A stretch of DNA of 64,000 nucleotides from Adineta vaga (GCA_021613535.1 CP075494.1:9176001-9240000); one strand, 5' to 3'; positions 47,398 to 52,768 are shown, counted from the stretch's first letter. Program-made: numbers and translations. The notes: generated from the letters alone by a model not told the origin.

Positions 47398-47963
47398 AAA
47401 GAAAAACAGAACATTCAACTTTACTCTCCATTTGTCCTACTTTTGCGTTTTTTTTTTAGAATCCTTGTAGAATAAATTCATATTTCCTTAAGGATTGGAT
47501 TTCTCTCTCAGATTAATGAATTCACAGAAAGAAAACATAACGATTTTTTAAATTTTGTTTCAGATATTTTGAATCAATCAGAATATTGAATTCTTTAGAC
47601 TTTAGACAAATAAATGATTTTCTTTTTCTAGATTATTTTTGTTGAAGTTTTATTTTTTATAATTGTTTATTACAATTTACCTTTTTGGTATGTATTCAAA
47701 TGATCCATTTCCTGTAAGAACTCATACATTATGATCTGATGTTCCGTATATGTTAACTATCTGTAAAGTAAAATTCTAATAACTGGTAATTAATTTTACC
47801 GGATACGGTTCGGCACAGAAAACAGGTTTATCGTTAGAAATAGAATTTCTTTCCGTTCTCGAGGAAATTTTGAAAACATTATAACAAAAATGATATCTTG
47901 GAAAATTTCATGTCTATATATGTTTGTATTTTAGAACTGTATGTTTTTGTTCCATTAATCTAA

Positions 47964-50900
47964 ATGCCTGGTATCAGTTTGAATTATGTAATTGATTAAA
48001 AATGAATAAATAAGTTAAATAATGATTGTCTGATTTTTACATTTCTAGCATTCTTCTTTATCCGTTGACGATTCAACATCTTATTCTCAACGTATTCATC
48101 CGTCTCAACAATATTATTATCAATCTGTTGAACAATCGACTTTCTATCCGTATCAGTCTCAATTATCGTTACAAAATGATCCTCAACAAAAATCTTCAAC
48201 ATCATCCACTGATACAAGAAAATGTGACTGTAAATATTCAATTCATTCAAACAACACAGATGACTTTTATGTATTATCTAGGGAATGAATTGGAAGTAAC
48301 TGGTAATGTTCGTAATCTATCACCAATATTATGGACATTATCACAATTAACGGTTCTATATTTAAATGATAATCAATTAACACGATTACCATCGGAAATA
48401 GCCTGTTTAACAAATCTAGTCACACTTGACTTATCAAATAATAAATTAAGAAATCTACCATCAGAAATCGGTATATTCTTTACTTTGTGAAGCTTTCTTA
48501 TTAGACTATGAAAACCATCATATCTTCTTTTTAGGTGAATTAATATCCTTACGTGAATTAAATTTAACAAATAATTCTATCCGAAATTTACCTTATGAAT
48601 TAGGTAAATTATTTCGTCTACAAAGTTTAGGTAATAAAACGAAACTATTTCTTTCATTCATTCTTAATTATATTGATTTTCTTCAAGGATTGATAGGTAA
48701 TCCATTACCATCAGAAATTTACACGTTATATACTGAATCAAATGGTTTACAAAAGTTATTAACTTATTTTCTGGATAGTCTACCTTCATCACTGAACGGT
48801 ATAACATATAAAACTCTAATTGTTTTTCTTATTTTTTCATTTATTGCTATCAAAGATCGCCAAGAGTTTCTTTTCTTTTTCTCTTTCGTATATTTTGTTT
48901 CGACTCATAGACATTGGCATAATTATCATGGTCTGTTATTACTTAAAACAGGTGAGTGGTTAAATTTGTTGTGTGTTTTTTTATCATCATTCATCCGTAC
49001 AGAGGAGTGTGTAACGCATATATTGCAAAATGATTATTAACCAATCTGTTATGAGATTTCCATGAGTATTTATATCCAAGATGTCTATTACACTGTACTT
49101 TGATAGTATTTCACGGTCATCAATTGCGCGAAAGCAAGTAGAAAGAAAATTGTTATTTGTTTGGACGAGTTACTATAATGCCATTTTAGCGTTTAGAAAA
49201 TTGTTATTGTCTGTTGTGTTTCTTTCCTTCTTCTTTTTTTGTTCAAATTAGTCGATAGAATTAAGGTTGACGGAGCAGATGTGTAGCTATGCTCATCTTT
49301 ATTCCGTCAAGAGAAAAACAGAACGAGCACGATCTGGAGGCGGAAGAACTGCGACATTAGACGTTTTCTTCTTCGCTTTTCTAATATATTGAACAGAAAA
49401 GAAATGAAGATTTTGTTTTTCTCTTCTGTCGTCATTCTCTTCTCCGCCTTCGTTCTCTGATGAATAATCGAAGTTCTTTTAATATACCGATTCATATATT
49501 CTTCCTCTTTTCTCTTTGGAATGATAGATACATACAATGATGACGTCAAAATTTTACTTATAAAACTAACATAAATAATTTGATATATTTATTCTAGTCT
49601 GACAAATCCTTCAATGTCATTCTAACATGTGTTCATTTACAGAATCGCGTCGTGTTACCGTTTCGTGTAAACATATCTTTTCTTCATGTACAAATGAATG
49701 TTCAACGGCCGCGTCTGTAGTTCGGACAACTAAACAAAAATTCAATGGAAAAATTTCCAATACAAAAGTCTTTCATGTTCCGATCGAACAAAAAACTAAA
49801 GTATTATCTAATAATGATTATTTACTCAGGACATCATTAAATCCATTATCACCTACTTTTCATTCTCATTATCAAACAGAATTTGTATCAAAGTAAGTTA
49901 TTTCAATCGTTTTTAAACAAACGTTCATTCAAATTATATTTTCTTTCAGTAAAACTAAATCTAAATATGAAACATCTGATTATGAGAGTGGTACAGATTA
50001 TGATCCATCGTCACCCATTCCATTTCGTCGTATATCCTCGTCATCATCATCTGGTATAAGTTCATCATCAGATACAAATGATAATATAATTTTATACTAC
50101 TACTGCTGCTGCTGCTGCTGCTGTTGTTGTTGTTGTTCCTATTATTATGAAAAAGAAAATCTTCCGTATCGTAAACGTTCACGACGTATTGGCAAGAAAT
50201 TATCTTATGATAATCACTCAATTAAATCAGTTAAAACTCGTTCACGTACGAAAACTCGTAAACAACGTTCAAATACTTCACTAATTGATTTCAGTATTGA
50301 TCTTACCGGTCAAAATGTAAATTATTCTATCGAATATCATTATTATCAAACATTCTTCATACCATTCTACTATGACTTCTATTATCTATCATGGCTTCAA
50401 TTATACTACTACTACAGTTATTTATACTTCTACTATTCACAATATTTCAATCGAGAGTGTGAGAAGAAACTCTTGACGATCTTTTTTTTCCTCTCTAAAA
50501 TATTTTAAACAGGTCAGAGAAATACAACAATATTTTCTTGTTTTTTTTCCTAGCTACTCAACCGCCACCGGCGCGGTCATGGATTCGTCTTGCATCACCG
50601 AATGCAACTCAACCAACAGCGATATTTACTATAATGAATTATAATATTCTTTGTGATAAATATGCGACAAGACATGTTTATGGTTATTGTCCATCATGGG
50701 CATTGAAATGGGATTATCGACGTAAACAAATTCTCGAAGAATTACGTTCATATGCAGCTGATATTATCGCACTCCAGGTTTGTGAAATAAACCTTTCCTC
50801 TTTCTTCTGAGTAATATTAAGATTTAATGAAGCAAAAATTTACTTTTTTTTTCAAGAGAAATATTTAATCAGTCGGAAAGTCAGAATTGTTTTTCAGCTT

Positions 50901-52279
50901 CGCTAACAATTATACTTTAGTGTTTTTCTTTTTTTACACTTCATAATTTCTCAGATACTTTTTAATACTTAGAAAAAAAAGGCAATCAATTGAGTTCTAG
51001 GGGTACTTTGTTTCGTCCAGATGGCATGTGTTTATTCTATTTTAGGAAATTGAAACTGATCAATTTCATGCATTTTTCTTACCGGAATTACAAAAGAATG
51101 GTTATGATGGTGTCTTTAGTCCAAAATCTCGTGCGAAAACAATGTGTGAACAAGATCGTCGATATGTTGATGGATGTGCAATATTTTATCGACAATCGAA
51201 GTAAAACAAAACCCAGTATTTGATCTTATTTTGTTTTGTTTTTTTCTTTTTATTTAAAGATTTCGTTTAATCAAACATTATCTTGTTGAATTCAATCAAT
51301 TAGCGATGTCTGCTGCGAATGGCACAGCATGTCATGATATGATGAATCGTGTAATGACTAAAGATAACATTGGTCTTGTCGCATTTCTTGAAACAAAAGA
51401 AGAAACTTATTCTCATACATTTTCAAATGGTAATAAGAACAATTTTCTCTTCTAATAGATGAATAGTTTGCATATATTTTTCCTTCAATCAAAGGTGTAT
51501 TACCAACGGATCATAAACAAATGCTGTTTGTATGTACAGCACATATTCATTGGGATCCGGAATATTGTGATGTTAAAGTTGTTCAAACTTTAATGTTATT
51601 ATCAGAATTGAAAACTATTATGGAAGATGCTATACAAAAGCACCGACCTAATTCGAATCAACTTGTTGATTGTTCAACAATTCCATTAGTTCTTTGTGGT
51701 GATTTCAATTCTTTGCCAGGATCAGGTATAACTGAAGATTAAATTCGTTCTGTTTCTCTATTTTTCTTTTGAAAAGGTGTCATTGAATTAATGCGTAATG
51801 GAAAAATATCAATGAATCATGCTGATTTTAAAGAACTTAGTTATGAAACATATTTACAAAAATATAGTCGTGTTGATGGAAATCCTACGTCAAGTAATGA
51901 TATTGTACATCAGTTTAAATTAAATTCAGCTTATGAAACAACGGCAGAACCAATTATGCCTTATACTAATTTTACGTAAGTTATGAACTACAAAACGATT
52001 GATTCCATGTAATACGCATCCTTTTTTCTGTATTTTAGGTATGATTTCAAAGGAATAATTGATTATGTATTTTTTTCTTCTCAATTAATGCGAGTTCTCG
52101 GTGTTTTGGGACCACTTGATCCAGAATGGCTTCAAACAAATAAAATAGTCGGTTGTCCACATCCAAATGTGCCATCTGATCATTTTTCACTCTTAGTTGA
52201 ATTCGAATTAAATCCATCAACCAATGATAATTCGAAAACTTCAACAACAACATCAACAATTCCAACACGTAGACAATAA
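47964..52279 (+). CDS. CNOT6: CCR4-NOT subunit 6 (CCR4/twin) deadenylase: LRR plus EEP nuclease domain
   Basis: LRRs LTVLYLNDNQLTRLPSEIACL; nuclease motifs NYNILCDKYAT, DIIALQE, TAHIHWDPEYCDVK, LCGDFNSLP, YTNFTYDFKGIIDY and PSDHFSL. Confidence 0.96.
49627..50458 (+). CDS. putative alternative exon pair of CCR4 (49627 or 49643-49892; 49950-50458) encoding a poly-Cys, basic and Tyr/Phe-rich segment
   Basis: Phase-compatible GT-AG junctions. The second exon is stop-free for about 170 codons and splices in phase 1 to the nuclease exon at 50554. Confidence 0.65.
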
Positions 52280-52768
52280 TATAGAGAACAAATATCGAAT
52301 ATACTCGCACAAATATTTAACGGTGAAATCTCAGGGGTTGATTAAGGTTATCTTCATTCAGTTTTATTCTTCTATGTATCTTTGTCTGTATTATGTAAGT
52401 TGTGTTTGTTCTTCTAATTGTCACATCATGTATAGTTTTTTATATTGACTATTATCTTTGTTCTTCTTGTCCATCATCTATCATTTTCTTTCTTCATCAA
52501 GTGACATAAAACCAAAATACAAAAGTTCGCTTATTTCTTTCTTTATTATTGTTGTTTGTTTGTCGATGTTCCTTTCTTTTCTTTTTTTTTCTCGCTCTCT
52601 TCTTTCTCTCTCGTTTTTATATATATATGTCTGTATCACAGCAATTTAAAAAAAACAAAGATCGTATAATAAGAATACAAAAAAAAGACATTTGAATATT
52701 TTCACTAATTATCGAGAAGAGAAGAGAAGAATTCAGTCTTTGGCGCTTGATCAAATGTATTATAAAGA

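Follow-up and report, generated by a model that had tools for sequence, protein, structure and literature searches.

A second, bdelloid-conserved transcription unit that may reside in an intron of Adineta vaga CCR4 and be looped out by an RNA duplex

In the bdelloid Adineta vaga, the 1.75-kb intron that separates the LRR from the nuclease exons of CCR4 may host a second, bdelloid-conserved transcription unit, with a stand-alone protein of ~275 aa as its main product and an RNA duplex near the intron ends that would loop this unit out. We assign this reading as a whole a probability of about 0.5. The two exons at its core, A and B, are genuine, conserved and transcribed coding sequence, and the published A. 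vaga gene model omits them.

The DNA analyzed here (the window) is a stretch of 64,000 nucleotides, C5:9176001-9240000 of the 100.8-Mb, six-contig A. vaga assembly, and positions are counted from its first letter. The host gene lies on the + strand, with a GRIM-19 gene upstream in the window as in all relatives fetched. Its protein is the NCBI entry 'hypothetical protein I4U23_024855 [Adineta vaga]' (P0024, 606 aa), in which LRR Pfam families are combined with Exo_endo_phos (PF03372) and which maps onto the window's exons, identifying the gene as CCR4/CNOT6. The parts of the host gene are:

48049-48229, 48282-48470, 48535-48630 and 48688-48798, + strand: LRR-coding exons (GT..AG joints in four RNA runs; P0024 mapping)
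48799, + strand: GT of the LRR exon donor, phase 1
50554-52279, + strand: six EEP nuclease exons (joints in four runs; P0024 mapping; Pfam PF03372), presumably common to both transcript types

RNA evidence was taken from Logan contigs of four A. vaga studies (runs X1, X5, X13, and X14), aligned to 47800-52500. These are assembled contigs only, from which minor forms are dropped and starts, ends, and true levels are not readable. GT..AG joints occur at every CCR4 intron in all four runs; thus, the contigs derive from RNA. The LRR exons are joined directly to the nuclease exons (48798>50554) in all four runs and from both alleles, which also confirms the LRR donor at 48799 and the nuclease start at 50554, both in phase 1, as the sequence-only reading had placed them. 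In the 5'UTR of CCR4, loose contig ends of three runs indicate an upstream exon (47654-47689) that ends near 47689 and is joined at ~47935; its last letters resemble what we take to be rotifer spliced-leader sequence. The LRR frame stays open for 80 codons beyond the donor (48799-49040), a stretch covered by low-depth unspliced contigs. A search of 47400-52600 against Rfam gave no match, and a literature search on bdelloid CCR4 found nothing.

Within the intron, the coding part of the inner unit consists of:

49627-49892, + strand: exon A, starting at ATG 49627 (ATGTGTTCA invariant in seven loci; ORF and donor conserved; RNA contigs)
49893-49949, + strand: intron of 57 nt between exons A and B (joint 49892>49950, GT..AG, in runs X1, X13, and X14)
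49950-50458, + strand: exon B, with a Ser-rich region, a CxC/poly-Cys site, basic patches, a DLTGQN..YxIEYH hairpin, and an aromatic helix (translation, homologues, alignments, dN/dS, AF2)

Exon A ends at 49892 before a GTAAGT donor, and exon B is preceded by a TTTCAG acceptor. The joint between them, which the earlier analysis had proposed as a check, is present in RNA contigs of three of the four studies at contig depths of 21.9 (X1), 36.2 (X13), and 6.7 (X14). The ORF from ATG 49627 to 49892 and the stop-free exon B with the exact peptide reported from sequence are likewise there. The stop-free run holding exon B spans 203 codons (49897-50505), while in 500 shuffles of the intron the longest such run averaged 78 and never exceeded 148 codons; the open frame is therefore not due to chance.

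Conservation among bdelloids, the second proposed check, gives the same result. The ohnolog on C2 shows the same layout, with a 4.5-kb intron and homologous open frames of 151 and 345 codons; as a separate observation, extra LRR-like tblastx matches lie upstream of its own LRR exons (L009:273-605). Across ohnologs and genera, exon B has accumulated many in-frame indels while the frame is kept, the motifs RKR, F..DLTG, and YH are invariant, and pN is far below pS, with dN/dS of 0.13-0.4 where dS is unsaturated. Moreover, exon A ends in a GTAA donor in every locus examined. A word search and a full HMM search recovered only about 20 relatives, all unnamed proteins and none longer than 391 aa; genomic or cDNA-like loci of several of them were retrieved for comparison. 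None of the 15 family representatives found among 1.84 billion proteins is fused to a nuclease. The splice in RNA of three studies, together with the conserved frame and the dN/dS of about 0.13-0.4, establishes exons A and B as real coding sequence. The view that they are intronic transcription noise over a chance open frame of simple repeats can appeal to low complexity (Ser, Cys, and Tyr runs) and to Pfam, in which exons A/B and their homologues have no significant match; set against a frame that exceeds all 500 shuffles, purifying selection, and an invariant start codon and motifs, it is barely credible.

The most conspicuous feature of exon B is a homopolymeric tract:

50104-50136, + strand: eleven Cys codons in a (TGC)7(TGT)4 microsatellite (TRF; an insertion relative to all homologues)

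This tract had been taken for a lipid or membrane anchor. The run of eleven occurs in the window only, and the relatives carry CHCEKEN, CSCGKEN, CCCEKEN (A. steineri), or YYYEKEN at the site, so that no conserved Cys cluster of the kind expected for palmitoylation was found among the homologues aligned. Judged from this alignment, the tract is a recent, A. vaga-only trinucleotide expansion at an ancestral CxC motif, and it is not supported as a conserved lipid anchor. Over 49950-50515, one poly-T deletion is listed, and the RNA contigs of three studies lack a further 3 letters of the window; the contig alignment skipped the repeat 50086-50151, and in-frame length variation of the Tyr/Cys codon run is probable. 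AF2 modeling, which like the searches took the exons one by one, gave mostly low confidence from a 21-sequence alignment, with the exception of a beta-hairpin (residues 112-127) and a helix (residues 139-168) at pLDDT 85-95. The aromatic segment is conserved in Adineta and Rotaria orthologues, and the long paralogue type lacks both it and any hydrophobic run. By Kyte-Doolittle hydropathy, the predicted aromatic helix of 30 residues stays below the Cys run, which holds the maximum of 1.81. Overall, the predicted inner product is a Ser-rich, largely disordered protein in which NLS-like basic patches, a conserved beta-hairpin, and an aromatic helix at the C-terminus can be recognized.

Several lines of evidence point to a start of the inner transcripts within the intron, some of them with a non-coding leader:

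48937-48951, + strand: 3' end of an optional non-coding leader exon, with donor GTGAGT at 48952, joined to 49598 (run X13 contigs)
49459-49486, + strand: conserved non-coding element of 28 nt, TGAATAATCGAAGTTCT.TTAA.ATA (alignment of relatives)

In RNA, exon A is entered through the acceptor 49597|49598, which is followed by an in-frame TGA at 49600 and therefore leaves ATG 49627 as the first usable start. Two contigs of run X13 carry 13 letters ahead of 49596 that equal window 48937-48949, then AG. We read these loose letters of the contig table as the junction 48951>49598, the start of the exon being unmapped. Were this junction used from the upstream promoter, the LRR frame would stop at 49600. 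Alignability between loci begins exactly at ATG 49627, and conservation from there onward fits a separate transcription unit within the intron. Upstream, in intron sequence that cannot otherwise be aligned, the 28-nt element is almost the same in L010, L011, and L013 and in part also in L012; it lies about 140-170 nt before the ATG and could act as a promoter or 5'UTR element for the inner unit. A perfect CRE, TGACGTCA, reported at 49541 is indeed there, but it occurs twice in the window against 1.1 expected and is conserved in none of the aligned relatives.

Contig depth, a crude measure, fits the same arrangement. Run X1 has zero depth at 49370-49526, and the depths over LRR, inner, and nuclease exons are 43.9, 21.9, and 63 in X1, 71.7, 36.2, and 109.7 in X13, and 125, 7-9, and 125 in X14. 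In these three runs, nuclease depth approximates the sum of LRR and inner-exon depth, as expected if inner transcripts include the nuclease exons and lack the LRR exons; run X5 does not fit this additivity. The ratio of inner to LRR depth ranges from about 0 to 0.5 between studies. Additionally, cDNA-like contigs from two relatives (L012 and L022) begin within the intron and run from exon B into spliced nuclease exons. As the A. vaga contig ends at 50515, continuity of its inner transcripts into the nuclease exons rests on depth arithmetic and on these relatives' contigs, which are possibly chimeric.

An alternative offered from sequence was that exons A and B form a cassette that inserts the anchor between LRR and nuclease in the full-length mRNA. 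The exons are phase-compatible with their CCR4 neighbors, and an AG at 49642, within TTTACAG, could serve as acceptor for an exon starting at 49643. Although the phases hold and the exons are coding and transcribed, neither 48798>49643 nor any other joint from the LRR exons to exon A occurs in the contigs of the four A. vaga runs, and none of the six aligned relatives has the AG of 49642. As the junction is unseen and its acceptor not conserved, we discard the cassette; the acceptor that is used, 49598, leads directly into TGA 49600, and the duplex described below would loop the exons out. A cassette is thus very improbable.

The second element of our reading is a long-range pairing between the two ends of the intron:

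48852-48875, + strand: E1, 5' arm of the duplex, 53 nt after the LRR donor (inverted repeat search, RNAduplex, compensatory changes)
50461-50484, + strand: E2, 3' arm of the duplex, overlapping the exon-B donor from +3 to +26, 69 nt upstream of the nuclease acceptor (same analyses)

E1 and E2 are 92% complementary over 24 nt and constitute the top inverted repeat of the intron. RNAduplex z-scores of -6.4 to -6.6 in four loci place this complementarity beyond chance. In the duplex core, 15 columns are paired in at least five of six loci, with compensatory double changes at -2, -1, +7, and +10, and A. steineri adds a seventh locus with E1:E2 pairing. Across loci, the distance from the LRR donor to E1 is 38-53 nt and that from E2 to the nuclease acceptor 59-93 nt, and in orthologues E2 overlaps the exon-B donor; the DNA-level conservation just past this donor represents one arm of the duplex. 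Loose contig ends at 48686 and 48861, considered as junctions near E1, proved to be artefacts: the contigs in question stem from an unrelated gene at C5:10.364 Mb and have just 19-21 letters in common with the window. In the ohnolog, an ATG inside E2 (ATGGCGATC; L009:6738-6811) is in frame with the nuclease exon without splicing and might open a nuclease-only frame in this one locus. As a general nuclease-only start it was rejected: in orthologues a stop follows, and the window has no such ATG.

In upstream-promoter pre-mRNA, E1:E2 would bring the intron ends together and cover the exon-B donor. The pairing probably loops out the inner unit in these transcripts, and we infer that it reduces the effective intron length and masks the inner splice sites, which would account for the exclusive direct splice 48798>50554. 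Conserved long-range intronic base-pairing is known to modulate splicing (Raker et al, 2009, PMC2724269; Kalmykova et al, 2021, PMC8052449). Those cases share with E1:E2 the complementary boxes near the ends of a long intron, the compensatory changes, and the enclosed alternative exons. In contrast, E1:E2 belongs to a bdelloid whose genome has mostly very short introns, one arm overlaps the 5' splice site of an internal unit, and the effect on splicing is predicted.

What the inner unit encodes depends on the segment between exon B and the nuclease:

50459-50553, + strand: 95-nt piece with the 5' splice-site motif GTGAGA (50459-50464) and the acceptor TAG (50551-50553), kept in the RNA seen (contigs of A. 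vaga and relatives)
50506-50508, + strand: TAA that terminates the exon A+B frame if the 95-nt piece stays in (sequence; translation of 49951-50505)

One A. vaga contig consists of 49666-49892 joined to 49950-50515, with no break at 50458, and the joint 50458>50554 is absent from the contigs of all four runs, in which a minor form could be missed. Among the relatives, the cDNA-like metatranscriptome contigs L012, L020, and L022 keep the piece while the neighboring introns are spliced out. Kept in contigs of four species or genes, the piece thus behaves as a retained intron; in L021 it is an ordinary intron of 62 nt. With the piece in place, the frame stops at TAA 50506 and yields about 275 aa without LRR or nuclease, its predicted C-terminal peptide ending in ..RECEKKLLTIFFFLSKIF. 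In our reading, inner transcripts would begin within the intron, some with the leader ending at 48951 spliced to 49598, open the frame at the invariant ATG 49627, splice exon A to exon B, and probably continue into the nuclease exons, which would stay untranslated in the sampled RNA owing to the stop at 50506. If the 95-nt piece were removed, the inner protein would be fused in frame to the nuclease.

This fusion is the strong rival to a stand-alone product. It holds that exon B is spliced 50458>50554 into a functional LRR-less deadenylase and that the unspliced bulk form is a detained precursor. The sequence-only reading had GTGAGA splice in frame to TQPPPARSW and an internal promoter drive such an enzyme. 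The donor is present, conserved, and in phase with the nuclease exon, the TAG acceptor is preceded by a pyrimidine tract, and the unit probably starts inside the intron, but the joint itself was not seen. Every lineage retains the motif GT[GA]A[GA]A (GAGT|GTGAGA, GAAT|GTAAAA, GAGC|GTGAGA), even though the -1 base and the amino acids encoded differ, and protein similarity ends at this point, giving way to tails of 2 to >30 codons. Such a pattern is characteristic of a 5' splice site. These patterns suggest that the piece is a regulated intron. Moreover, NCBI models of A. steineri and Rotaria fuse exon B to the nuclease, the A. steineri model (P0144) with exactly a 50458>50554-type junction, and LRR-less CNOT6L isoforms have been modeled in a mollusc and an insect; the conserved donor and the bdelloid models leave room for a minor or conditional fusion. 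Against it, no fused ORF from exon B to the nuclease was found in any transcript assembly, the fused models being genome-based predictions whose splice is unsupported by the available RNA, and where the hidden-exon frame could have been joined in frame to the EEP nuclease, the A. vaga contigs, L012, and L022 read through. A donor proposed for Rotaria socialis (P0026), a GT inside the DLTG codons, was rejected, as A. vaga contigs are continuous there. In a Rotaria-like ENA contig (P0018), the piece is stop-free and in frame, so that read-through would already fuse exon B to the nuclease without splicing.

In the sampled conditions, the read-through contigs and the lack of a fused transcript ORF lead us to rank the stand-alone product above the fusion, which we regard as rather unlikely. 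Two arguments weigh against this ranking. An upstream frame of 275 codons followed by five exon junctions would normally subject the transcript to nonsense-mediated decay, yet the form is abundant; and the conservation of a 5' splice site precisely where protein similarity ends speaks for the fusion being important.

A further rival assigns exons A and B to a separate nested gene, polyadenylated near 50515 and never reaching the nuclease exons. In three runs from three studies, the exon-B contig ends exactly at 50515, with no extra letters, variant, or joint, and the frame has already stopped at 50506. A donor at 50513, an acceptor at 50512, and a poly-T length variant were tried as causes of this end, and none fits exactly. 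A nested gene is nevertheless improbable: 50459-50553 contains no AATAAA or ATTAAA, the contigs carry no A-tail letters, the relatives' contigs L012 and L022 continue from exon B into spliced nuclease exons, and nuclease depth is about the sum of LRR and inner-exon depth in three runs.

The closest known counterparts of the inner unit are NCBI models from other bdelloids. Proteins of Adineta steineri (P0144, 671 aa), Rotaria sp. Silwood1 (P0143, 683 aa), and R. socialis (P0142 and P0026, 684 and 619 aa), each an 'unnamed protein product', share the MCS.. methionine and exons A/B, which in these models are joined to the EEP nuclease in a protein with no LRR; a literature search found no paper describing them. 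These predictions are mutually discordant on the junction, whereas the transcript contigs examined keep the piece and stop before the nuclease. The annotations of R. socialis and A. steineri (L017 and L024) divide the locus in two, one gene with only the LRR (209-226 aa) and one combining exons A/B with the nuclease, and they hold no canonical LRR-nuclease model, though this is the main mRNA in A. vaga. Outside bdelloids, LRR-less CNOT6L RefSeq models of Patella vulgata (X3) and Bombus affinis (X2) likewise place a first exon in the intron before the first nuclease exon and encode the EEP domain only. Their N-termini are about 10-40 residues long and in frame, compared with a conserved own frame of 260-470 codons in A. 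vaga and its relatives, whose leader-nuclease junction was, moreover, not seen in RNA contigs.

Nocturnin, ANGEL, and PDE12 are stand-alone EEP deadenylases without an LRR that are encoded by separate genes. The fusion, if it exists, would resemble them in combining a CCR4-type nuclease with a different N-terminal module; unlike them, it would be an isoform of CCR4/CNOT6 itself. Detained or retained introns, reportedly treated by Boutz and colleagues in 2015, share with the 95-nt piece a short length, good splice signals, and presence in transcripts whose other introns are all gone. The difference lies in the product: here, retention would give a stand-alone protein where removal might give a fusion.

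The locus adds a covariation-supported long-range RNA pairing, which is new, in a gene that probably harbors a transcription unit of its own within an intron, and its striking poly-Cys tract is a warning, being a young microsatellite and not a conserved anchor. CCR4 docks on the CCR4-NOT complex through its LRR, so an LRR-less isoform would act outside the complex; whether exons A/B reach the nuclease therefore matters. Tentatively, and with considerable doubt as to the scheme as a whole, bdelloid CCR4 might be a switch with three outcomes, in which the duplex would commit transcripts of the upstream promoter to the canonical LRR-nuclease CCR4, the internal promoter would yield a bdelloid-only protein, and regulated removal of the 95-nt piece would produce an LRR-less CCR4 without need for CAF1 docking, to which the basic patches and aromatic helix could give a nuclear or membrane placement.
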